Source: Botryllus schlosseri (taxonomy: Eukaryota). Taken from it: a DNA stretch of 64,000 bases. Shown here piece by piece: positions 1 through 61,516 of the stretch. The position numbers and the translations under genes were made by a program. A model generated the notes under the pieces. It had not been told where the DNA came from, did not search any database, and saw only the letters and a list, made by a program, of their open reading frames with translations. Location of the stretch: the NCBI GenBank assembly GCA_051294905.1, contig CM119376.1:17360001-17424000 (forward strand). Direction: 5' to 3'. Position 1 is the first letter of the stretch; every line of letters begins with the position of its first letter.

Positions 1-3000
1 GAATCATTGCGGGCCACTGTGGATTTCATTTCCACTGTCAATTCACCAGATGCATCTAACAGTTCTGAGGAAGACAAACGAGACCTGACCGGTAATCATG
101 GAAATCCATGTAACACGAGAGAGACTGATGGATCTTCGTCTGATAATAGCTCTTCCAGAAGGACTTCTTTCGACAGTGAACTCAAAATTGTTTGCAGACG
201 GATTAGATCGTGTTGCAATGATAAAGGGCTGAAATGAAGAAAAATCTCTACGAAACAGGGCAACATTTTCAAGCATTAGGAGAGCTGTATGTTACCATGG
301 CAATGAACGAAGTCTGCTCGACGACGGATCAAAAACTGCATTTTATCCGGGCAGCTGTGCTTTTCAATGCGGCGATCGTTAGATTTGGAATTGCAGATAG
401 TTCCTGCGACCAAGTTACGGCTACTGAAAAGCTGCAGTGCTTATTCAAGCAAATTTACGGGATAATCGGGTCGAGTGAAACCGATCAGACACTAATAGAG
501 TTTTGCCAGGAACTGAAGCACGAACTGGGAAACATCAGAAGACACGAAAGAGAAATTCTGAACCGCGTTAAGAGACTACGATGTTCAGGGGCTTCGAAAT
601 TGGACTCTAATGGCAAAGGACAAGTTACCTTCATTAGAGAGCTGACCGAAGAAAATTCGACAAATTATCGACGTATCATGGTGAAAGTTTTGGGGAAATG
701 CATAGACGTTATGGGAGACCCCCCATGTGACTTCGAAATTGTTGGTCTCGGTTCGTTAGCGAGGGGGGAAGTGACCATGTCTTCAGATTTTGAACATGCA
801 ATAATTTTAGATGACAAGGTTTTGATCGCCAAGGAGATTCGAGAATATTTCAGATGGCTCACAGTTCTTTCTTGTATCATCGTAATCGGATTAAGAGAGA
901 CAATCGTTACCAGTGTTGATATCAAGTATCTGTGCGATCCCGACGCTCTAGACAAAAGTGAATGCTGGTTCAAGGATGAGTATACGCCTTGCGGATTATC
1001 GTTGGATGGTATCATGTCACACGCCTGCAAGTGCCCTATCGGGAAGGTGAGATTAACCAAAAATAGGAAGCACAAGGTTGAACTCATACAGACCGCACGC
1101 GATATGGCGACATACATGACAATTAGCGAACAGCTGAAAATGGATATGTACTGGATGACATCCTCGGCACCACTTGTTTCGTATATGGCAATATGACTGT
1201 CTATGATGCGTTTCGTGCACAATGTCACAAAATCAACCTATCACAGACTGGTGCAGTTCTTTATAAGCAGCAACGTGACTTGCTTCGACACGTTATTCTC
1301 TTGGAAAGTAGTGAAGGCAATATTCATGTGAAAAAGGCGATATATCGACCCATATCAGTTCTCTTACACATAATTGCGAATATCTTCAAGTCGTACTTCA
1401 GCAGCAGCTTTTCCATCCTTGATGATCTGTTGCACAAAGGCGTTATTGACATCGAAACATACGCTGAATTGTCACGCGCGGTCGGCGTAGCTTTGGAGAT
1501 TCGCATGCGTTGCTCTCAGACGAGGCATTGTCGAAAGAATGTCATCAAATGCAAAGATCTGAAAGACTTGATCGGAGCTAAACACGCTGCATATCTCCAA
1601 GAAGCCCCCCGTTTGCTCATTAGTACAGTTAACGATCTGTTGCACAGAAAGTTCATATTGGAAGAAAAGCGTGATGCATTACACTTCACATACCGAACCT
1701 GTGATATTTGGTATAAAGTGAATTATGCGTGTGAGATCGCATTGCGTATAAACGACGAGAGTCTCATTTTCGACGTACTGGTAAAGATAACCGAACTTCT
1801 AGAACAATACCGGACAAACAAAATAGACTCAACTACAGCTTATCGATGTTTAACAATGCAAATCAGTGCGTTGTTTATCTGCTTGTCAAATTGGCTTTTG
1901 AGCACCGTCAATTCCCCGTGTGTCCTTGATTCCATGTCCGTAGGCGTCATGAGAGACCCAGTAGACTGGTGCTGCAATGTGCTATCTAAGTTCGAACCTT
2001 GCATTTCAATTTTACTGTGCAGAGTAGGTAGCCTGTATTCGCATCAACGATATGACGAAGCAAACAAATATCTTGACGAATGCATAGCGATGAGTTTGAC
2101 GAAGCAAAAAGTTCCCGATTCAGATCTGGATTCTATAGCAGAATGGGAAGTCGCAGTGAAGATGAAGAGCTTATCATCGCGCGAAGCGCAGAAATACTTC
2201 AGTGCAGCATTTTCTAAATCGCGCAATTCAACAAAGTTCGTGCAGGCAATGCATCATATCGGCAAGTTAGAGGCGGAAATGTTATGTGAAAGAAATAAAT
2301 CTGAAGATATTCCTTCTTTAATGCGAACGATCATGAACAAGATTCAACTAAATAGTGGCATTTTCCAACCTAGCCAAGTCCGAAAACTATTGAGCCATAT
2401 AGCTCGTATTATGCTTTCAATTCAAGGTGGCACCAGCGTTGCAAACGCTAAGCAGCAGCCAATTATCAGTCGAGATACAAAAAAACCGACAACTCCGAGT
2501 AAAATACATGTAAAGATTACTGGACGCCAAAGTCACACCGCAGAACACTACAAATATTCCTTCGGAATTCAACGGAATATCGGCAAACATTCCAACTTTA
2601 CCTTCACAAAATCACGATACGCGGGGCCATTGATTGTGCAAGAAGTCATTGTGAATTATTATCATGCGTGGCAAATATTCTCTGCGGAAAGTTACGACGA
2701 CATGGTGATGCTTATTGAATATAGCATGAATGAATTACTTACTTGTCCAAAATTGCGCCCACTGGAATGCACGCGATCCATGATAAAACACACCAAATGC
2801 ATAGCCTTGTTGGCTTTGTGTGAAAATATCAGAGCTTCTGATCACTGCTTATTTGAAAAACTGTGCGACTCCGCACCTATTGAAATCAAGAAGACGGTAT
2901 TATTCCAGTCATTCATTTATCCTTGTTTGAAACAACTTTCATCGCGATTGTTGATCAAACGAACGATGGTTACGAAACAAAATGAAGTGTGTAAAGGAAT

Positions 3001-3538
3001 ATTCTGCAATTCAAGCTTTCTCGTGGGGAATTAATTCAGAGCTGCTGTGTTGGATTTCGTCAATTTCAGATTCAACGAAAGCATCAAACTCGTATGGAGA
3101 ATACTTCATCGTGGTGACTGTACCGGTAGAAACTTACAGACGAAGTTTTTTCTCATGTGCCTACTCGCGATCATGATCGAAAGAAAACGGGAATGTCCCC
3201 TTCCACATTTACGAAAATGCAGGGAATTCGCCGCCAAACACGCCTATTTGTGGGACACGCAAGGAAATATCGATAAGGCCAAACTTTTCAGGGAGAATCA
3301 GATTGTGTCGAGATTCTACTACCGACAAAATAGTGCGCTCGCTGCGGTGTATAATCTGGCCGTGGATGCTTCCTTTTTCGATTGGAGAGGTTCTGCGGCA
3401 CTTAGTTGGAAACTTCTACATACTGGGAAAGTGAGAAATGCATTGCTGGACCACTGCTCGCTCTTATTACTTCACGTGGCGGAGGTAGCGTACGGCGAAG
3501 CTATCAAATATCAGTTAATGCTTAATGCATCAACATAA
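1..3538 (+). pseudogene. Disrupted, divergent paralogue (copy A) of the DUF294-like nucleotidyltransferase gene; 5' end runs off the window
   Basis: ORFs 7-237, 234-1196, 1193-3034 and 3047-3538 align collinearly with the 1215-aa ORF at 13351. One base is missing in each of two A-runs (232-234 and 1137-1140), and an in-frame TAA at 3032-3034 sits where copy B has TCA. The motif GLGSLARGEVTMSSDFEHAIILDD is intact. Confidence 0.85.
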
Positions 3539-12699: not shown

Positions 12700-13212
12700 T
12701 TGGTTTTAAACAAATGCCCTTTTGAGAAAAAAAAATTGTTTTTTTTCTTTCAAACGTTGTCTAATTATGCCATAATTGTGTAAGTACGTCCGAAAACCCA
12801 TGTAGTATGAGCCTACGGACGATTTACACCAAGAATAGTCGACGTATACGATGTGGGGTGGCTGGAACCCTCGAAATCGTCGTCGGCTCAACAGATTTTG
12901 AATGTAGGTATAGGTCATTGGTGCGGAATGGGTGTTCTGATGATGATGACCGCCAACCGTAAAAATGCTGCATAATGATGTAGTTCTGGTTAAAGATATT
13001 TTTGGTCTCTTTATGACAGTGGTCGGAAGCCCTTTTCGTCGAAGGAGCCATATTTACCCTATATTTTCAATTGTCGATGTCAATCCACTTTGACGTCACA
13101 ATTAAATATTCGTGACATCATGGCGAAAAAGAATTGAAAAACATGTTTTAGACAAGGGTCTTGTTTTAAAGACGTTTTTTTTAAATCGATTTTTGTTTTA
13201 AATGCAACCCTA
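12700..13212. mobile_element. Partial copy of the TAGGGTTGCA-TIR MITE family, just upstream of NTase copy B
   Basis: Ends in AATGCAACCCTA; interior matches 21110-21549, ~19276-19630 and ~37058-37570. Confidence 0.7.
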
Positions 13213-13350: not shown

Positions 13351-16300
13351 ATGTCGTTCTTCCAAAGAATAAAAGAGAGATATGAGGATATTCGCAGATG
13401 CGATAAACTTTTCGATGATTTAATGGAACACCGTGCTTTACTGATTCGTGGTAAAGACATCGAATCGATAATGAAGTCTATGAATATCTCAGAGGAGTAC
13501 ATCTCCGCTGTGAAATCGTCCGAAGCATTTCAAAGATATATGGATGAGAGGCCAATCCTGAACTCAAGCGATCAACAGAACACTCAATTTTTGTCCGATA
13601 GTTGTTTAGTTGACAGAACGTGTCTCGACGATAAGTTAAAGAATATTTGTGAACAGATTCGATATCATTGTGACAATTATGGAAGAGAAATAAAGAAAAA
13701 CCTGTACGAAACGGGGAGACAATTTCAGAGATTGGGGCAGTTGCACATCACCATGGCAACGACCGAAGTACGCTCGGCCATGAATCAAAAATTGGATTTC
13801 ATCAGGGCGGCAGTGCTTTTGAATGCAGCGATTGTTAGGTTTGAGATCGTTGGCAAATGTTACGATAAAATGAAAGCAACAGAAAACTTCCACGATTTAC
13901 TTAAAAAGATTTATGAGCTGATAAAATTCAAAGGTGACGACTGTAACATGATTCAATTCTGCCACGAAATGAAGCAGGAGATTCTAAAGTTAAGAGCTTC
14001 GGAACAGGCGAGTTTGGGTCGTGTGAAGAAATTGCGATGTGCAAACGATCAAGATTTTGAATCAACGGGAAAATCTGAATGCTCCGAGATTAAGAAAATA
14101 ACCGAAAATAATTCGAAAAATTATCGACGCATCATGGTAAAAATTTTAGAAAGATGCCGGGAAATTATGGGGAAGCCCCCCTGTGAATTCGCCATTGCTG
14201 GTCTCGGTTCATTAGCTAGAGATGAAGTAACGCTGTCGTCAGATTTCGAACATGTAATTATTTTGGATGACAAGGTGGTCGTTGCGGAGGATATCCGAGA
14301 GTACTTCAGATGGTTCTCCATTCTCTCATGCCTTGTTGTCATCGGATTAGGAGAAACAATCGTTCCTAATGTTGATATCAGATATCTTTGTGATCATTAC
14401 TCCTCGTACGAAAGTGAGAAATGGTTTAGAGACGAGTACACTCCATGCGGATTATCATTTGATGGAATGATGCCGCACGCATGCAAAACTCCTATAGGAA
14501 GACAGAGACCAACCAAAAATAAAAATAATGCTGTTGAACTCATCCAGACCGCATCTAACATGGCGAAATACATGACATCAAGCGAACAATTGAAAAATGG
14601 ATACATGCTGCACGACGTCCTTGGTACCACCTGCTACGTTTATGGTAATGAAGATGTCTATGATTGTTTTCTTGCACAATGCCAAAATAACAAACAAACC
14701 ATGCACGGAGACATTCTACGCGAGCAGCAATATGACCTGCTTAGATTTGGTAAAAGTGCGGAATTTCATAGAAGTTATTATATTGATGTCAAAAAGAAGT
14801 ACTATCGACCAATAACTGTCCTTCTACACGTTCTTGCAAATCACTTCCATTTAACCCAACAGAACAGCTTTAGTATTCTCGATGACTTGAAGCGTCAAAA
14901 TGTTATTGACGCAAGCATATATGATGAATTATCGCATGCAGTGGCAATAGCTTTGGATATTCGCATGCGTTTCTATCAGACTAGAAACGGACAACGGAAT
15001 AACATCGAACTCAAGGATCTGAGCAGAATAATGGGAACGAAACGTATGGTACATCTTGAGATCGCCACCTATTTTCTTGAAATTGGAGTCAAAGATCTAA
15101 TGTACAGGTCGCACGTATCGAGAGAAGATTGTATGAATTTGCGTTTCCCCAGAAGAGATTCTGACATTCGATACGACGAGCGTTGTATTTACGAGAAGTC
15201 ATATCGCGAAGACCACGGATCTTTGATTTTTGATATCCTTGGAGAAATAAAGAATCTTTTACATCAATACGAGACTAAGAAAATACTCCCGGCGACGGCT
15301 TGCCAATTCATAACCGTACAAATCGTGGTGCTACATGACTGCTCAATAGCACTGGATAGAGGCGCCAACCCGTTTCCGAATTTACGTGATTTCACCCCAA
15401 ATTTAGAGCCTATTGTGAACGACCTCTTTGAATGGTCATATGAGATACTTTGCAAGTTCGAAGCAGGCATCCAATATTTCATTAGTAAGATAGATATCCT
15501 ATATAGACACGGGCAATACCACGCGGCAAACAAATATCTTAACCAATGTGTGCTGGAGCTGTGTTGTGATAAACAGAAATGTTCAGATCATTATTTAGAT
15601 TTAGTAGCAGGATGGGAATTTGAATTAAAGTTGGTGATCCTTTCACCGAGGGAAGCAGTAGAGTATTTTGCAGCAGCTGCATCTGAACGACGCAACCTAA
15701 CTGATTTCACACAAACATTGTATCTCATTGGTATGATAAAGGCTAAAATATTATGCGGGCCGAAGATATACGACCCGATATGTCAAGTTTCAACTTTGAA
15801 AGGTATTGGACGGCAAGTCAATTCACTCACACATCGTCTTAATCCACTCCAATATTGGAAGATATTGTCGACTATCTGCATTATTTTGATTGATAGCAAT
15901 CGAGGTTTCGATTCTTTGGAATTCTTCCGATCGATCGTCAATATGGCGGACAAACGGCGGGCAAACGATAGTAAACCTTTGAATGATTTTGGGAAGAGTA
16001 TCAACTCGTCAGCACATTATAAATATGACTATGGCATAATTCGGAATACCGGAAGACATGCCAATTTCACTTTCGCAAAATACGAGTACACAAGGCCTCT
16101 GGTTATGAAGGAAGTGGAGGTCAAATATCATCACGCGTTGCAGATATTCTCGTCGGCATCGTACAGCGATATGCTGATGCTGATTGAATATATCATGGAT
16201 ACAGATCTCGGTTACAAGGAAGTGCCAAGCGAATACGTGGACATGACGGTTAAAACTACCGAGGGTATTGCGGTTATGACAATGTGCGAAAATATCAGAG

Positions 16301-16998
16301 TTAGTGACTACAGTGTTTTAATAAAACTGTTCAACTCCACCTCAGCTGGTACGATGAAGAGTATTCTACTCCAGCCATTCATTTACGCTTGTCTCAAGGA
16401 TTTCTTCGCAAGTTCGTTAATAAATCGAACACTGATTATAAAGCAAAAAGCCATATGCGAAAGTATTTTTCTCTGTTCAAGTTTTGCCGTTAATGATTCA
16501 TTTAAAGCTGCTGTATCAGATTACACAAATTTTGAATTTCGCGAAAGTGCCAAAAAGGTTTGGAAGATGCTTCAACGTGTCAATTGCGCTTGTAGTGAGA
16601 CGAAGACAAAGTTTTTTCTCATGTGCGTGCTAACCATCATGATTGAAAGAAAACGAAAGCGGCCCTTTCCTCATTTGCGAAAGTGTAGGGAATTATCTCT
16701 CGTACAGGCTTCTCTGTGGCATCTGTCAACTCATAAAGCCCCGGGTAATCATTACAAGATGTTGCCAGGGGTGTCACGACTCTACGAACAGGGAAATGAT
16801 TTTCTCGTGGCAGTATACAATCTTGCAGTGGACGCATCCGTTTTTGAGTTTAGAAGCTGCTGTGTATTGAGTTGGCAGCTGATCCATACACGAAAATTAC
16901 GGCATCGATTGCTACGGCGTTGCATGCTGTTGTTATTATATACAGTGGAGGTAGCGTACGGCGAAGCCCGCGAATATAGTTACGTACATAGATCATAA
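13351..16998 (+). CDS. Intact intronless 1215-aa protein (copy B): helical N-terminus, DUF294/GlnD-like nucleotidyltransferase, DUF294_C-like helical domain, long helical C-terminus
   Basis: Uninterrupted ATG-to-TAA ORF. Motif IAGLGSLARDEVTLSSDFEHVIILDD (14200-14270) fits the Pol-beta hG[GS]x9-13Dh[DE]h signature. DVKKKYYRPITVLLHVLA...LDDL...I...ELSHAVAIALDIRMRFY (14785-14976) resembles DUF294_C. Two paralogues are in the window. Confidence 0.9.
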   Translation: MSFFQRIKERYEDIRRCDKLFDDLMEHRALLIRGKDIESIMKSMNISEEYISAVKSSEAFQRYMDERPILNSSDQQNTQFLSDSCLVDRTCLDDKLKNICEQIRYHCDNYGREIKKNLYETGRQFQRLGQLHITMATTEVRSAMNQKLDFIRAAVLLNAAIVRFEIVGKCYDKMKATENFHDLLKKIYELIKFKGDDCNMIQFCHEMKQEILKLRASEQASLGRVKKLRCANDQDFESTGKSECSEIKKITENNSKNYRRIMVKILERCREIMGKPPCEFAIAGLGSLARDEVTLSSDFEHVIILDDKVVVAEDIREYFRWFSILSCLVVIGLGETIVPNVDIRYLCDHYSSYESEKWFRDEYTPCGLSFDGMMPHACKTPIGRQRPTKNKNNAVELIQTASNMAKYMTSSEQLKNGYMLHDVLGTTCYVYGNEDVYDCFLAQCQNNKQTMHGDILREQQYDLLRFGKSAEFHRSYYIDVKKKYYRPITVLLHVLANHFHLTQQNSFSILDDLKRQNVIDASIYDELSHAVAIALDIRMRFYQTRNGQRNNIELKDLSRIMGTKRMVHLEIATYFLEIGVKDLMYRSHVSREDCMNLRFPRRDSDIRYDERCIYEKSYREDHGSLIFDILGEIKNLLHQYETKKILPATACQFITVQIVVLHDCSIALDRGANPFPNLRDFTPNLEPIVNDLFEWSYEILCKFEAGIQYFISKIDILYRHGQYHAANKYLNQCVLELCCDKQKCSDHYLDLVAGWEFELKLVILSPREAVEYFAAAASERRNLTDFTQTLYLIGMIKAKILCGPKIYDPICQVSTLKGIGRQVNSLTHRLNPLQYWKILSTICIILIDSNRGFDSLEFFRSIVNMADKRRANDSKPLNDFGKSINSSAHYKYDYGIIRNTGRHANFTFAKYEYTRPLVMKEVEVKYHHALQIFSSASYSDMLMLIEYIMDTDLGYKEVPSEYVDMTVKTTEGIAVMTMCENIRVSDYSVLIKLFNSTSAGTMKSILLQPFIYACLKDFFASSLINRTLIIKQKAICESIFLCSSFAVNDSFKAAVSDYTNFEFRESAKKVWKMLQRVNCACSETKTKFFLMCVLTIMIERKRKRPFPHLRKCRELSLVQASLWHLSTHKAPGNHYKMLPGVSRLYEQGNDFLVAVYNLAVDASVFEFRSCCVLSWQLIHTRKLRHRLLRRCMLLLLYTVEVAYGEAREYSYVHRS

Positions 16999-18533: not shown

Positions 18534-20894
18534 ACGACCTTGATTAGCTGTCTCTCTATATATTGTGTCGCTCCAAATTTGTTGTTTCTCGGTAGCTTAG
18601 TTGCTGGCATAGCTGTATTGCGTATATTGCTCGTTTTCAGTTAATGAAAGCATTGGTTAGTCAGTGTAATAAAGGTCATCACAATGACATGCTTGCATTT
18701 AATTTCTTTAATCTTTTTTTAAATATAGAGTACTTTTTTGTATAAATTTGCAAGTTGAATCTTGTTTACCATTAATAACAGTGTAACTACATGTTGTACC
18801 TTGTAACCATGCGATGTTACCAATGCACTACATCAGTGTTTCCTAAACCTTTTTCACATAACGCCCTCTTTGACCAGTAATCCAGCAACAAAAATTTGTT
18901 TTGTTTATTATACTCTCACAACGACCTTGTCGCTCATGGCACTTTTAGCTTAATATAATTCATAGGCAACACACTACACGTTATTTCAAAGTCCGAACTC
19001 TGTAGAAATCTCAGGACAGACACAATCAAGGAATGAAATCGTACATTCCATTTTCATTTTAAATGTCACTGTACTTCACTGCCGTGAATTAAGTTCCTAA
19101 TAATTCATCATATACTCGTCGTACAGGTGTTTATACACATGTGTACCATAAGTCACGCTGGCTGAGAATTCTGTTCGTTATGGTAGAAGTAGATATGTTA
19201 GAAAACTCTATATTGCATGCCAATGAACATCTATGGATAGCGATGATTACGATTTCAGATTGAATACACCTTGTACAACAGCGAACGACGTATATAGGGT
19301 TGCAATTAAAACAAAAATCAATTCAAAACAAACATGTTTAAAACAAGGCCCTAGTTTAAAACATGTTTTTTATTGTTTTTATGATTTTTTAAAAGCCATG
19401 ACGTCACGAATAGTCAATTGTGACATTGACATTGACAATTGAAAATATAGGGTAAATATAGCTCCTTTTACGAAATATCTACGCACTATTGCTGTTGAAC
19501 CGACTATTTTGAGGGTTCCAACCATCCCATATCGACATACGTCGGCTATATCTGGTGGGAATTGTCCGTAGGCTCACACAACATGTTTTTTGGAAAGCAT
19601 TTACACATTTATGGCATAATTTTACAACTTAAAAAAAATTTCACCTACAATTGTCACAGTATTATTTCTACGTTGTCGCGGAGTCATGAAGAGGCATATT
19701 CCAATGATATAAGTATCGGAGCCTATGAAGAGGTCTATACGAGTCTACAACGTGCATTCCATGACGATCATCTTCAATCTGTTTGCCATGGTCGTATATG
19801 ACATCTGCTAGAATGATAGGATTTTGTTTTCAATTTTTAATACCATGTCTTTCATCCCAGCTGGAAGTCAGTACGAGTACTCCCTGTAAGTGACATTCAT
19901 ATATCTGTAATTTCTCAAATAAAATCATGTAAATGTGTTCTTATTGCTAGCTCCCAATATATGTTATCCAAACATCAGGCGTCAGGCTGTGACCTGTGAC
20001 TTAAAGCAGAAAGAGCATGACTTCCAACTATCCAGGTCTCATTTGAAGCTCAAATCGAGAGTCCAATAGAATAGGTTTATAATCACTGCAATGATGTCTC
20101 ATCGATAATTGGGTGGTCGAAACCGCCGATTTCAAGAACGATTTGGAGTAGGCCTACTTAGCAATCCGTCTAAGAAGCTTTTCAGAATGTTCTAGAACAG
20201 GGGTTTAAACCTGTGGTCCACAGGAGCATTTTGAGGTGGGCCACGGAGCTATTTGGAAAATTGTGGATGTATGGTGAGTGGTGAGTTTATTTATAATCGT
20301 TATATTTACGACATTTTTTTTATGTAAAAAACTTAATTTTGACCAAATTTTGACCTAACGTATTAGGTGGTTTCCCACATAATGTTAGAATTGTACTACT
20401 TTTATTCCTTTCTGGTTCGAACTGCCTGTCCGTACAAATACGAAGTAGTTCGGCCTGAAAAAACTTTTTTGACTCCAAAACTGACAAATTGTTTCATGAA
20501 AAAACTTGATTTTAACGAAATTTGACCCTATGAAGAATTCCAGTAGTTACATCACGAATTATGGTAGAAATAATTAAAATCTGTTGTAGTGCAACGAGAG
20601 ATACTTTCCTACATTCTCGGGTAGAAAGTGTCGGTCCTTACTAAGTAGCTTGCCAAGAATGGAGAAACATTAGCAGTTGTTGGCTGACAACATCGAAGTT
20701 GTGCGTGCGTATATACTGCTGATGACACAGCGCTTTTCTTCATTCTGACAATGGTGTCAACACAACAATATACTTTACGAGCTCAGTGGGTTACCATTTG
20801 GTTTCCCTGAAGCTCGCGCAGTTTCGAGCACACAAAAAGCTCTAGTATCAACGCATATGTGAAGTACCAGAAATGCTTTTTCATTTCATTAATT

Positions 20895-22155
20895 TTATTC
20901 ATTGTGGCGCATCTCATTCCCAATTGCAATCAGCCCCATTTCTGACACCCTGGAACAGTCAATGTCAAGTACCGGATATTCGAACACTGGGCTGTTGAGG
21001 AATGCAATTGATGTCTCTATGGATGAGATTTTGGGAATGGCGACTATGTAATCAGTAAAAATTTTGAATCTCGGATGAGAGACGTCGGTATGCCCTGCAT
21101 AACTGGGATTAGGGTTGCATTTAAAACAAACGGTGTTTCAAAACACTTTGTTTAAAACATGTGTTTTAAAAAAAGGCCTTTTCAGAAAAAATAAAATTGT
21201 TTTTCTTTTAAGCTGTAAAATTATGCCATAATTGTGTCAATACTTTACAAAAAACATTCTTTTGAGCCTGGACAATTACCATCCGATGTAGCCGACATAT
21301 ATCGATAGGGGATGGTTGGAACCCTCATAATAGTCAGTTCAACAGCAATAGTACATATATTTCGTCAAAGGAGCTATTTTTACCCTATGTTTTCAATTGT
21401 CAATATCAATCCACTATGACGTCACAATTGAATATTCGTGACGTCAAGGCTAAAAAAAACATAAGAAACAATAAAAAACATGTTTTAAATTAGGGCATCG
21501 TTTTAAACATGTTTGTTTCAAATTCATTTTCGTCTTGAATGCAACCCTAACTGGGATAGGGCACAGCAATTCTTCAACATATCAGGAATTATGCTCGCTG
21601 CCAGTCCCAGACCTGTCTAGTCAACGTCTACTTTGAACTGCGTACTTACAGGCTACATACGATGTATAAGCGACATTTCAGTTACTTCACATAAGTGTTG
21701 ATGCTATGCTTTATATGCCCGAAAACCTTGCAAGCCTCAAGAAAACCAAATGGTAACTCACCAAGTTTATAAAGAACACTAGTCATCTGGGTGTCTTTCA
21801 ATATCACCTCAAACCCCTGGTCAAAGTATAATTGAAAACATCGGCGTTCTACTAGGACGCATGAAGACAATTAAATGGTTGTCACTGAATATGGAGAATG
21901 ACGTGAAGAGAAGACGATAACTTTTGATTGGAGGAAAAATTGTGATGATTGTAATGAACCAAAGGCGAGATTCCTCAAGCATCCTATCGTTTCATGAACC
22001 GAGTTCACTACATATAATGAAGCATAATCTAATTCCACTGAAAATATAATTTTTTTCCATAAGTCACAATTCACTTGCCAGAGGATGAAAGGAGTGCTGA
22101 AAAGCGAATAATATGATATCATGATATTACAATGCATTGTGAAGAGTACAGTCAC
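20895..22155 (-). pseudogene. Degenerate coding-like segment, possibly a STAND-NTPase/NLR-like remnant, interrupted by a MITE
   Basis: ORFs 21871-22155 and 21682-21870 are one frame broken by a single stop (~158 codons). Motifs VIVFSSRH and KLGELPFGF resemble NB-ARC sensor/GxP regions. A downstream piece, VLDIDCSRVSEMGLIAIGNEMRHN, is LRR-like. Judged by eye only. Confidence 0.3.
21110..21549. mobile_element. Complete hAT-type MITE
   Basis: TIR TAGGGTTGCA...TGCAACCCTA; perfect TSD ACTGGGAT (21102-21109, 21550-21557). Confidence 0.9.
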
Positions 22156-35778: not shown

Positions 35779-38314
35779 TTAACGTGTCTTGTGACATATC
35801 CAATCCAGTAACAAACTCGTTATTTGACTTGCGCAACGTTGGCGTAATCATCGTACCTGAAGAGTATTGAAGTGTAAGTAAAATCTTGTCACGCTTGGTT
35901 AGAAAAGTTCAGCGATCAAATTACCGAATAAAACAATAGAGCACGGTGGCAGGCAGAATCTCGCGGTAGTTGATTACGATTACATATAAAAGTTAAATCG
36001 CGTAGTGATCGTTGCGACGCGATGACCAACATAGCTAATTCTTGTAATAACCATGATCAGTGGAATTTACAAATCTGACGTTTCTACTATCAAATACGCT
36101 GTTCTACTGTCAATAACACTGTTCAAAACTGTATAATTCGTCTTAGTAAAACGTTGAGTCGTAGTCCCTTTAGATAGGAATCAATTAGATATGTTAAATA
36201 ATTGACTACACAATACACATACGATTACTTTGATTTTCTCGAATGAAATCGATTACGATTACGATTATTTGAAAAGGCTGTAATCTTATTAATCGATTAC
36301 GATTACAAAATAGAATTAACGAATGTCTGGTGGTGGACGGATTAAGGCAACGGTATACAAGTAGATACATGCGCCAACAATAATTCAACTTGGAACCGCG
36401 GTTATATGACAGTTCAACTCGGTAAATGCGACACAATTTCTGCGTCTCGATACAAAAGTAGGCGTAATGCGTTTTTCGTGATTGTACATGGTACATATGC
36501 ATTCAAGATGTCCAGAGTTTCTTGAAGTGGATTTTTATTTCCATTAAAAGAGTTCAAAAAATCTACATTTTAAGAACGTCCAGTGGTACTTTGCGTTTTA
36601 AACTTATGTCGCACGCGAGTCTCTGAAACGCGTTATGACAGTGACTATATAGACAACTGTATTGCAATCACAGATTAGTATATAAATATAAACCGCGCCG
36701 TTGAGATTGAGTTTAAAGTAAAAACAAAAACATTCATGCGGAACCTCAATTTTCAACAAGCAAAATATAAAATTTATGGTTAAATTTTATCCACCGCACA
36801 GAGATTTTAAATTTTGGTGACTGAAATCATGGATAGTTACGTTACGCATATATGATTAAGCAGCTGTGAGAAGTGGGCATGAGCATTGAGCACAGATGTA
36901 CCGTATGGCTCAACTATATTGCATGCGATATCGTAAATGGACCAATGATTCCCAAACTTTGGTACGCGCACCTCCGGTGGTACGCGAGACCCTCTCACGT
37001 GGTTCGTGAGTACGTCAGTGCACAGATGAATTTGCGAACTTTGTATGGGGATGGCTAGGGTTGCGTTTACAACAAATAGTTGAATAAAACATGTTTTAAA
37101 GTTGTATAATTATGCCATAATTGTATAAATACTTTCCAAAAAACGTGTTGTATGATTCTACGGACGATTAGCACCCGATATAGCAGACGTATACGATATA
37201 TGGCAAGGTTGGAACCCTCTGAATAGTCGGTTCAACAGCTATAGTACATAGATATAGAAAATTGGTGTGAATAAATGTTTTGATGATGATGACACCCGAC
37301 CGCAAAAATGCTGCATGACGATGTAGTCTTGGTTAAAGATATTTTTGATCCGTATATGACAGTGGTTGAAAGCCTATTTTGTCAAAAAAGCTATATTTAC
37401 CCTATATTTTCAATTGCCAATGTCAATCCACTATGATGTCACAATTGAATATTCGTGACTCGTGGCGTAAAAAAATAAAAAACAAAAACAATAAAAATAC
37501 ATGTTTGAAACTATAGGGCCTTGTTTAAAACATTTTTGTTTTAAATGGAATTTTGTTTTAAATGCAACACTATATGGCAGGATTTGTATTTGCTGTTCAA
37601 GTACAGATCATATTCAGCTATCCATATACCCATTGTAGACTAGCTTGAAAAAGTCAGGTATGGGCCAACGTCATCTCCGCAGTCGATGCAACCCTTCCTC
37701 CTGCAGCCCTTCGTTGGTGGCTTGGCAGACGTAACTGCTGGACTCCACAATACCTGCTGGAGTTCCCATCCAGTCTAGGTTGAAACCAATGAAAAAATGC
37801 AGTGCGAACTCAGTGAACATGTGATGTCTGATTTTAATCGCGATTGAAAGTTTAATATGTAAAGGACGGTTATTCACATTTAACAGATGCTGATATTTGG
37901 CATTAGTTTTCACATTACTGCATCGATTTGCGGTCTTGAAATGCACTGCACGCATACGTATTATTCCTTAATTTACTACGTGATCTCGGGATTTGCAGTG
38001 TCTCAGAACAACCACGTTAGCTGTTGCTATGCTGTAGTAATTTGTAAACAATTTGGATGTAGTGGGCCTAATTCCCGATCGAATTTTGAATGGAAAAGAA
38101 AAACGTTTAACCTCTTCGATATCTACTTTTTAGCAAATTTTACACCCTTCTTTACAAACTACGCCATATTCGGTGAACGAGTGCTGTTAGTAATGTTAAT
38201 GCCGAAAATAATATATTTGTAATTGGTGTATCATGTGGATTTCAACATGGCTGTCTTATTTCGCAATGATCAGATTATTTCACCTAACGTTCGGTTTTTA
38301 CCTCGGACGCAGCA

Positions 38315-57865: not shown

Positions 57866-60800
57866 ATGTCTCTGATACGAAGAATAAGGGACATCTATGA
57901 GGATATTCGCAGATGCGATAAACTTTTCGACAATTTAATGGAACACCGTGCTTTACTGATTCGTGGTAAAGACATCGAGTCGATAATGAAGTCTATGAAT
58001 ATCTCAGATGAGTACATCTCCGCCGTGAAATCGTCTGAATCATTTAAAAAATATATGGATGAGAAGTCAACCCTGAACTCAAGCGATCAACACAACAGTC
58101 CATTTCTTTCCGATAATTATTTGTCCGATAGAACGTTTTGCGATGGCGTGTTAAAGAGTATTTGTGAACAGATTAGATCTCACTGTGACAAATATGGAAG
58201 AGAAATAAATACAAACCTGTACGAAACAGGGAGACAATTTCAGAGATTGGGGCAGTTGCACATCGCCATGGCAACGACCGAAGGACGCTTTGCCATGAAT
58301 CAAAAATTGCATTTCATCAGGGCGGCTGTGCTTTTGAATGCAGCGATTGTTAGGTTTGAAATCGTTGGCAAATATTACGATAAAAGGAAAGCAACAAAAA
58401 ACTTTAACGACTTGTTTTAAAAAATATATGAGCTGGACGAATTCAAAGGTGACGACTGTAACATGGTTCGATTCTGCCAAGAAATAAAGCAGGAGATCCT
58501 AAAGCTAAGAGATTCGGAAAAGGTGAGCTTAGGTCGGCTGAAGAGATTGCGATGTGCTAAGGATCGAGACTATGAATTAACGGGAAAATCCGAATGTGAT
58601 GAGACTAGGAAAATAACCGAGTATAATTCGGAAAGTTATAAACGCATCATGGTCAAAATTTTAAAAAGGTGCGTGGAAATTATGGGGGAGCCGCCTTGCG
58701 ACTTCGCTATTGCTGGTCTCGGTTCAATTGCCAGGGATGAAGTGACGCTGTCCTCAGATTTCGAGCACCTAATCATTCTGGATGACAGAGCAAACGTTGT
58801 GGAGAGTATGCGAGAGTACTTTAGATGGATCTCCGTTCTCTCCTGCCTCGTTGTCATCGGCTTAGGAGAAACAATCGTTCCTAATGTTGATATCAAATAT
58901 CTATGTGACCATTACTCATCCGACGAAAATGAAAAATGGTTCAGAGACGAGTACACTCCATGCGGATTATCATTTGATGGGATGATGCCACACGCGTGCA
59001 AAACTCCTATTGGCAGACAGAAACCTACCAAAAATAAAAATAATGCGGTTGAACTCATCCAGACCGCATCTGATATGGCGAAATACATGACATCAAGCGA
59101 ACAATTAAAAAATGGATACATGCTGCACGACGTCCTTGGTACCACCTGCTACGTTTATGGTAATGTAGATGTATATCATTGTTTTCTTGCGCAATGCCAA
59201 AATAACAAACAAACCCTGCACGGAGACATCCTACGCGATCAGCAATATGACCTGCTTAGAAATGGTAAAAGTGCGGTATTTTTTGGAAATTATTATGTTG
59301 ATGTCAAAAAGAAGCTCTATCGCCCAATAACTGTTCTTTTACGCGTTCTTGCAAATCACTTCAATTTACCCCACCAGAGCAGCTTTAGTATTCTCGATGA
59401 CTTGAAGCGTGAACGTATTGTTGAAGCGATGATCTATGATGAATTGTCGCATGCAGTAGCAATGGCTTTGGAGATTCGCATGCGTTTTTATCAGACTAGA
59501 AACGGGCAAAGGAATCTCATCGAACTCAAGGACCTGAACAGCGTGATGGGCACGAAACGCATGGTACATCTTGAGGTCGCCACCCATTTTCTCAGAATTG
59601 CAGTTAGAGATCTAATATATAGGACGCACGTATCGAAGGAAGATTGTAAGAAATTGCGCTTTCCTACAAGAAATTCTGACATCCGATACGGTGTGCGTTG
59701 TACATACGAGAAGTCATATCGCGAGGACCACGAAACTTTGCTCTTTGATAGTCTTGGAGAAATAAAGAATATTTTACAACAATACGAGACCATGAAAATA
59801 CTCCCAGCCACCGCATACCAATTCATTACCGCGCAAATCATGGCGCTGCATGACTGCTCATGCTCAATAGTATTGCAGATATGCGGTAACCCGTTTCCGA
59901 ACTTTCGTGAATTCACCCCAAATTTACCTGCTATTGTGAACGATCTCTGCGAATGGTCATGTGAAATACTTTGCAAATTCGAACCCGGCCCGCGATATTT
60001 CAATAATATGATAGGTATCCTGTTTAGGCGCGAGCAATACAACAAGGCAAACATGTATCTTATTCTTGACCATTGTGTGTTGGAACTGATTTTGAATAAA
60101 CAAAAATGTCCAGATCCTTATTTAGATGCAGTAGCAGGATGTGAATTTGAATTGAAATTGGCGATTCTTTCACCGAAGGAAGCGGTGGAATATTTCGAAG
60201 CAGCTGCATCCGGGCGACCCAACCTAACTTGTTACACAAAAACATTGTATGTCCTTGGTATGGTAAAGGCTCAAATATTATGTGGACCGAAGGAACACGA
60301 CCCGATATGTCAACTGTTATTTTTGAAAGTGATTGGGTGGCATGTCAATTCAAACACTCACCGTCTTAAGCCACTCCAATACCGGAAGATAGTGTCATGT
60401 ATCTGCAAAATTTTGATTGATAACTATGGAGGTGACCATGCTTTGGAATTCTACCGATCGATCATCAATATGGCGGACAAACGGACGGCAAACGATAGTA
60501 AACCGATGAATGATGTTGGGACGAGTGTCAATTCATCAGCACATTATAAATACGACTATGGCATGATTCGGAATACCGGAAAACATGCAGATTTCACTTT
60601 CGTAAAATCCGATTACACAAGGCCTCTGGTTATGAAGGAAGTAGAGGTGAAATTCCATCACGCGTTGCAGATACTCTCGTCAGTATCGTACGGTGATATG
60701 TTGATGTTGATTGAATATAGCATGAAGAAAACTCTTCGTTACAAAGCAGTGCCAGGCAAATACGTGGGTATGATGGTAAAATTTACTGAGGGTATAGTGC

Positions 60801-61516
60801 TTATGGCATTGTGCGAAAATATCAGAGCGAGTGATCACAGTTTATTTATAAAACTGCTCGACTCCACATCAGATGATACAAAGAAGGCTATTTTACTCCA
60901 GCCATTCATTTTCGCTTGTCTCAAGGAATTCTCTGCGCGGTCGTTGATAAATCGACCGATTATAGCGGAGCAGAAAGATACGTGCAGACGCATTTTTCTA
61001 TGTACTTCTTTCGTTGACGATTCATTCAAAGCTTCTGTATCAGATTACACAAATTTTAAATTTCGTGAAAGTGCCAAAAATGCTTGGAAGATGCTTCAGT
61101 ATGTCAATTGCGCTTACAATGAGGTAAAGACAAAGTTCTTTCTCGTGTGCGTACTAACCATCATGGTCGAAAGAAAACGGGAGCAGCCACTCCATCATTT
61201 GCGGAAATGCAAGGAATTATCTCGCGTACACGGCTCTCTGTGGGAGAAGTCGACCCAAAAAGCCCCTCTTTTCGAGACGTTGCTAGGGTCGTCAAGATTT
61301 TACGTTCTGGGAAATAGTACTTACGAGGCGGTGTACAATCTGGCTGTAGATGTATCTGTTTTCGATTTTAGAAAATGTTGTGCATTGGTTTGGAAGCTGA
61401 TCCATACCCGAAAATTGAGACATAATTTGCTGCAGCGTTGTGTGCTGTTGTTAATAGATACAGCCGACACCGCCTACGGTGACTCTCGCAATCACGGTTT
61501 CGAATATAGACTGTAA
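57866..61516 (+). pseudogene. Copy C of the DUF294-like nucleotidyltransferase gene; one in-frame TAA (pseudogene, polymorphic allele or base error)
   Basis: ORFs 57866-58420 and 58463-61516 are in the same frame. TAA at 58418-58420 replaces AAA (Lys) of copy B at a T4/A6 junction. Otherwise collinear with B, with the motif GLGSIARDEVTLSSDFE intact. Confidence 0.85.

Follow-up and report, generated by a model that had tools for sequence, protein, structure and literature searches.

What would an animal do with a nucleotidyltransferase (NTase) of bacterial type, encoded without introns in one very long open reading frame (ORF)? The question is raised by 64,000 nucleotides (nt) of Botryllus schlosseri DNA (GenBank assembly GCA_051294905.1, contig CM119376.1, positions 17,360,001 to 17,424,000 of the forward strand; this whole stretch is called the window), which holds three local copies, A, B and C, of a DUF294-type gene. 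Within copy B an earlier note, made from the letters alone, had pointed to positions 14200-14976, corresponding to amino acids (aa) 284-542 of the ORF, as a catalytic site with a DUF294_C-like bundle. Here we describe copy B, whose conserved module is, on its predicted structure, of the GlnE/DrrA adenylyltransferase type. We consider the chances evenly balanced that the protein is an active protein nucleotidyltransferase of this type, transferring adenosine or uridine monophosphate (AMP/UMP) with its helical-repeat parts serving to aim or regulate it. A 1215-codon open frame at 40% guanine plus cytosine (GC) lies far beyond chance (about 1e-34 by our own estimate, with ~6% stops per random codon).

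Searched against Pfam, copy B matched DUF294 (PF03445) at aa 245-322 (E 4.2e-9; 36.9 bits against a cut-off of 21) and DUF294_C (PF10335) at aa 476-559 (E 3.5e-7; 30.6 bits against a cut-off of 22.5). This order of domains, both above the gathering cut-offs, is common to copies B and C; in copy A DUF294 lies above its cut-off and DUF294_C, at 19.7 bits, below 22.5. No CBS or cNMP domain was matched in Pfam in any copy (E <= 0.1), and no ACT domain in copy B, which bears out the earlier note's impression that these regulatory domains are absent. Copy B likewise gave no Pfam match to F-box or OTU and no match at all in NCBIfam.

The module occupies aa ~90-600 and is composed of hairpins resembling tetratricopeptide repeats (TPRs), which include the TPR-like helix pair already recognised in front of the catalytic site, followed by a polymerase-beta-type alpha/beta core and a helical KNTase_C-type domain. 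An AlphaFold2 model of this region, built from the family alignment, reached a predicted local distance difference test score (pLDDT) of 90.9 and a predicted template modelling score (pTM) of 0.91. The AlphaFold and Foldseek comparison that the earlier note had suggested placed DrrA (6yx5) and both halves of Escherichia coli GlnE (3k7d, 1v4a) on top among PDB entries, and all 30 best matches among Swiss-Prot models were GlnE. The predicted structure has the two-domain fold of this enzyme type, with an NTase alpha/beta core and a C-terminal helical domain of the KNTase_C clan. Because of these PDB and Swiss-Prot matches, the resemblance would extend beyond a motif to the entire module.

Residue conservation was scored in an alignment of 72 family members. 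The catalytic G-S and D-x-E motifs, which had been described as complete-looking, are complete: all 72 sequences have G286, D298 and E300, together with E335, D361, D371 and E396, and 71 have S287. In copy B the hG[GS] motif is followed by [DE]x[DE] within the interval of 9-13 residues that characterises the GlnE/DrrA type, and in a profile search of the PDB the GS...SDxE motif paired with G98...D110-x-D112 of DrrA. In these enzymes Mg2+ is held by three acids, D110, D112 and D150 in DrrA and D701, D703 and 'D753' in GlnE (PMC7815794). In the translation of glnE from E. coli K-12, the aspartate of Y-E-V-D-A-R-L-R-P is residue 752, as against D753 in that paper; D701 and D703 agree.

The third acid required closer alignment. 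D371 is most likely the best candidate, judged from the alignments, and corresponds to the aspartate at 14461 that had been proposed as a third carboxylate. It follows a family-specific insert between helix alpha-3 and its own strand, of which S369-F370 are a strand in the AlphaFold2 model. When Holosporaceae paralogs and compact distant bacterial homologs were included, both MAFFT modes aligned G-h-h-h-x-h-D...R-P-x-G of GlnE onto G367-L-S-F-D371...T-P381-I-G383, with D371 at most two residues from the third aspartate of GlnE. D371 is also retained in every bacterial relative examined, and D361 is not. Two other placements were discarded: when the family profile was compared with E. coli GlnE by hhalign (probability 2%), the third aspartate fell on the non-invariant D348, judged an alignment artefact, and a first MAFFT run set it on the non-conserved aa 342, judged an artefact of the family-specific insert. 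Both pairings were rejected because the addition of intermediate bacterial sequences shifted the match to G367...D371. E335 had at first been preferred as the equivalent of DrrA D150 by spacing (+35 against +38) and was lowered after the alignment with intermediates; it remains a candidate alternative or additional metal ligand, and the invariant D361 likewise remains a candidate third acid.

Selection was assessed from copies B and C, whose DNA similarity covers the ORF, ~70 nt upstream and ~30 nt downstream, with one short colinear patch further downstream. The ratio of nonsynonymous to synonymous substitution rates (dN/dS) was 0.37 over the whole ORF (dS 0.38), 0.13 in the NTase core and 0.37-0.50 in the tail; these values therefore indicate constraint, strongest in the catalytic core. 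Purifying selection is strong on that core, there is no sign of overall positive selection, and the tail value reflects constraint, not diversifying selection. The genome contains at least 16 DUF294 loci on seven large contigs, mostly as open frames of 730-1300 aa. A further 14 loci were retrieved: eight long paralogs whose single-exon frames of 1137-1300 aa are intact, five of a shorter kind (728-940 aa), and one, L014 (C11:8217000-8224000), a broken member of the long subfamily consisting of two ORF pieces with an in-frame TGA. The local copies A, B and C are not counted among these.

The C-terminal half is of a different character. The region aa 600-1215 is predicted to be all-helical in a model of moderate confidence (pLDDT 68.5) built on a shallow alignment of 11 sequences. 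The ~650 aa that the earlier note had called helical and unassigned are helical throughout the prediction; "unassigned" holds for the last ~330 aa, and the first half resembles TPR repeats. This half would be a degenerate TPR-like solenoid; in Pfam, TPR matched no part of copy B and only weakly 3 of 11 paralogs. Run as a profile against Pfam and the PDB, the C-terminal alignment returned weak TPR matches only, and the last ~330 aa matched no family; a word-based homolog search with aa 600-1215 found nothing, and a feature search of the ESM Atlas with aa 860-1215 gave nothing usable. Many polar residues are invariant in the last ~330 aa, which are common only to the long subfamily and one metagenome or SRA protein (P0001), and canonical TPR_12/TPR_10 arrays occupy the tail position in most relatives. 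The C-terminus is variable, as had been said of it: paralogs share 26-31% identity with copy B in the tail versus 46-47% in the module.

GlnE adenylylates glutamine synthetase on a tyrosine, GlnD uridylylates the PII protein on a tyrosine, and DrrA AMPylates Rab1 at Tyr77. A mechanism for copy B can be proposed by analogy, since every characterised enzyme of the same structural type follows this pattern. Mg2+ and a nucleoside triphosphate would be held by D298, E300 and most likely D371, and the target protein would receive the nucleoside monophosphate on one of its hydroxyls. Binding of the target or of an activating ligand would fall to the C-terminal ~600 aa, with the degenerate TPR-like solenoid and the subfamily-specific helical domain, so that the tail may act as a sensor or substrate selector, as the earlier note had suggested. 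A role in conflict or innate immunity rather than housekeeping fits the single-exon genes, the tandem and dispersed copies, the mixture of intact and broken copies and the parallel expansions in intracellular bacteria; the same features also fit an origin by gene transfer involving bacteria.

The target could instead be something other than a protein. The enzyme might, like cGAS, OAS and the CD-NTases, synthesise a signal made of nucleotides or oligonucleotides, or it might nucleotidylylate small molecules or the ends of RNA in the manner of ANT/KNTase and MNT, with the TPR-like tail as the sensor. Copy B gave no Pfam match to a Mab21/OAS-type domain, and the cGAS/OAS/CD-NTase fold was absent among the top structural matches in PDB and Swiss-Prot. 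We regard a non-protein target as unlikely, the best of the alternatives though it is.

Several points weigh against an active protein nucleotidyltransferase. Only copy B is intact locally, copy C being broken by a stop codon and copy A by a stop codon and at least two frameshifts; the three copies of the earlier note give the same two Pfam families but are not all intact. Three bulk RNA-seq runs labelled as this species, taken as 6-13% subsamples, placed zero reads on the ORF, which is not evidence of silence, and one of the three (X13) placed no reads anywhere on the window and hence was no test. Contigs over part of the ORF, at 14796-15551 and with ~1% differences, come only from one small run of uncertain type. 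A few partial RNA-seq reads fall on the dispersed repeat upstream and not on the ORF; these probably stem from other copies of the repeat because they match in part and then run on into unlike sequence. The last 330 aa are without an assignable fold or function in the Pfam, PDB and Atlas searches, the fold search having barely tested this region. Aligned without intermediates, the third-aspartate position of GlnE falls on aa 342 or 348, which are not conserved, and the third ligand therefore depends on a single alignment route. We know of no biochemical evidence for any animal DUF294-type protein. Finally, the fold leaves the direction of the reaction unfixed, because the N-terminal domain of GlnE shares it and yet removes AMP.

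The broken copies and the missing ORF reads, together with the birth-and-death turnover of the family, in which L014 is broken too, would also suit local genes that are decaying relics without present function, copy B being intact only through its youth. We hold this to be decidedly improbable: at a dS of 0.38 the low ratios in the core and overall indicate long-term constraint after duplication, copy B retains all catalytic residues, eight other long paralogs keep their frames intact, and so long an open frame is unexpected in neutral sequence. Removal of nucleotidyl groups, by a de-AMPylase like the N-terminal domain of GlnE, or a bifunctional enzyme, would accommodate the shared fold, and nothing in the sequence tells the directions apart; the best match, DrrA, is a transferase, and no partner AMPylase or known AMPylated substrate is evident, so this reading appears very improbable to us.

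The coordinates of copy B, its parts and its two neighbours are collected in Table 1.

Table 1. Positions in the window of the three DUF294-type copies and of the parts and key residues of copy B
Feature	Position	Strand	Remarks
Copy A	1-3538	+	Decayed; its start lies ~122 nt ahead of the window; reading frame changes near 231-273 and near 1136-1139; TAA at 3032-3034
Copy B	13351-16998	+	Intact single-exon ORF, 1215 aa, intron-less
N-terminal extension, aa 1-89	13351-13617	+	Short conserved helical motif, then variable acidic linker; long subfamily only (alignment)
TPR-like helical hairpins, aa ~90-200	13618-13950	+	Start of conserved module; includes LGQLH...AAVLLNAAIVR pair
NTase alpha/beta core, aa ~270-440	14158-14670	+	
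G286-S287, hG[GS] motif	14206-14211	+	G 72/72, S 71/72; pairs with DrrA G98-S99
D298-F-E300, [DE]x[DE] metal-binding motif	14242-14250	+	72/72; pairs with DrrA D110/D112 and GlnE D701/D703
E335, G-E-T-I-h-P loop after helix alpha-3	14353-14355	+	Invariant; retained in distant bacterial homologs
D361, family-specific insert W-F-x-D-x-x-T-P-x-G	14431-14433	+	Invariant in 72; missing in some Holosporaceae and distant bacterial members
D371, end of short strand G-h-S-F-D	14461-14463	+	72/72; candidate third carboxylate
Helical KNTase_C-type domain, aa ~441-600	14671-15150	+	Holds DUF294_C (14776-15027); invariant K481 and R486
Degenerate TPR-like solenoid, aa ~620-880	15208-15990	+	
C-terminal conserved helical domain, aa ~889-1215	16015-16995	+	Motifs HYKY, LCEN, LQPF, RKR..P..HL.KCRE.S, YN.AV
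Copy C	57866-61516	+	Paralog colinear with B, identical to it at 74% (aa) and 83% (nt); Lys186 of B replaced by an in-frame TAA at 58418-58420

The N-terminal extension gave no Pfam match. Its first ~55 aa (13351-13530) form a helical motif common to the long subfamily, I-Y-x-x-I-R-x-x-D ... G-x-x-A-I-x-x-D-M-G-V-S-E, compared here between copy B and the N-termini of L001-L007 and L014; it could be an adaptor or a helix-turn-helix-like element. A dispersed repeat of ~200-480 nt occurs in both orientations at 12744-13212, directly upstream of copy B, and at 19295-19638, 21139-21550 and 37094-37575. The window is gene-sparse, at ~40% GC overall, and its long ORFs fall into three groups only.

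HMMER, run exhaustively with aa 1-640, retrieved 1324 representative clusters at E <= 1e-3, in which the conserved unit is aa ~90-560. The close relatives that carry names come from Styela clava, Branchiostoma lanceolatum and B. belcheri, where they are listed as uncharacterised proteins, and similarly named cluster representatives in AlphaFold DB superpose on the module with template modelling (TM) scores of 0.72-0.84. Searched across 185,579 bacterial and archaeal species genomes, peptide patterns of the family matched a single one, Holosporaceae bacterium 'Namur' (1.9 Mb), in which about a dozen ORFs, 1200-2270 aa long, contain 18 matched stretches; at least one of these ORFs combines DUF294 with TPR_12. 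Among 60 sampled relatives of 'Namur', two have similar expansions, three gave weak matches and 55 none. 'Namur' and two relatives (1.7-2.4 Mb) each carry 13-28 NTase-module stretches, roughly a dozen or more copies, inside ORFs mostly of 1000-3700 aa that are often clustered on one contig.

In a FastTree tree rooted on distant bacterial homologs, which is limited by long branches and unlabelled sequences, the animal proteins form one clade (support 88) above an unresolved basal grade of Holosporaceae. The shorter paralog L012 (C2:20805000-20812000) groups with Styela clava proteins (support 99), and Branchiostoma stands at the base of the animal clade, which hints at a place of this animal nearer to the tunicates. 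The tree and the intron-less genes are compatible with a bacterial origin of the animal family by transfer from bacteria to animals, for which they are only suggestive. That the stretch is instead symbiont DNA misassembled into the animal genome, as the intron-less genes, the bacterial-type domain and the close homologs in Holosporaceae might suggest, is scarcely conceivable and was rejected, since the window is internal to a 31-Mb contig in a eukaryotic genome of 495 Mb, its GC fraction is even (0.35-0.43) and its ORF density very low, dispersed eukaryote-type repeats flank copy B, the loci are spread over seven large contigs, and in the tree the animal copies share a clade with proteins of Styela and Branchiostoma, separate from those of bacteria.

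Public databases already list proteins of the family, as uncharacterised entries, and the pair of domains has been catalogued. Our literature searches found no description of the animal family, many text matches to 'DUF294' being DUF2946 or unrelated. Fic and SelO are the only metazoan AMPylases named in a review, and the GlnE/DrrA type is treated as bacterial in the literature cited. A tentative and, in our view, rather doubtful extension of these results is that a large GlnE/DrrA-type AMPylase/UMPylase family exists in animals, at least in tunicates, amphioxus and this species, as a third metazoan class beside FicD and SelO; the family would derive from TPR-fused NTases like those expanded in intracellular bacteria and would serve in host-microbe conflict as a set of modifiers guided by their repeats, and the present subfamily would have exchanged its TPR array for a new C-terminal domain. 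The family comprises more than 1300 sequence clusters, its catalytic module is predicted to match DrrA and GlnE over the full structure, and it is encoded in animal chromosomes. If the family is active, invertebrate chordates would possess a whole branch of protein nucleotidylylation that is unexplored. It also ties animal genes to effector-like expansions in endosymbionts of amoebae and protists (Neochlamydia NEX2, Holosporaceae), and so offers a concrete example in which gene flow between eukaryotes and intracellular bacteria can be studied.

Compared with known systems, the module is closest in fold to the N-terminal AMPylation domain of Legionella pneumophila DrrA/SidM (PDB 6yx5, 3nku), with 12% identity. 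The animal module is longer by ~140 residues, including the N-terminal TPR-like part and the invariant insert at aa ~345-394. DrrA is a secreted bacterial effector in which this domain is fused to guanine nucleotide exchange factor (GEF) and phosphatidylinositol 4-phosphate (PI4P)-binding domains and not to TPRs. To E. coli GlnE the hhalign probability is 2%; compared with GlnE and GlnD, copy B lacks the PII- or glutamine synthetase-related partner domains (HD, ACT), has a longer insert in place of the R-L-R-P loop of GlnE, and is a eukaryotic gene in a large family. Bacterial cNMP-CBS-DUF294-DUF294_C proteins share the two Pfam domains with copy B in the same order, but in copy B cNMP and CBS are missing and TPR-like parts stand on both sides instead. 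In Neochlamydia, NEX2 is a 50-member family with F-box, sometimes OTU, DUF294 and C-terminal TPRs (Domman et al. 2014, PMC4209131). The NEX2 and Holosporaceae proteins are bacterial and are presumed effectors in host cells, and neither the F-box of NEX2 nor canonical TPR_12 repeats were found in copy B by Pfam. One Holosporaceae paralog, L016, shares 36% identity over aa 148-345 of the module query. Like the animal family, NEX2 and the Holosporaceae paralogs carry a DUF294 NTase followed by TPR repeats and have undergone large lineage-specific expansions.
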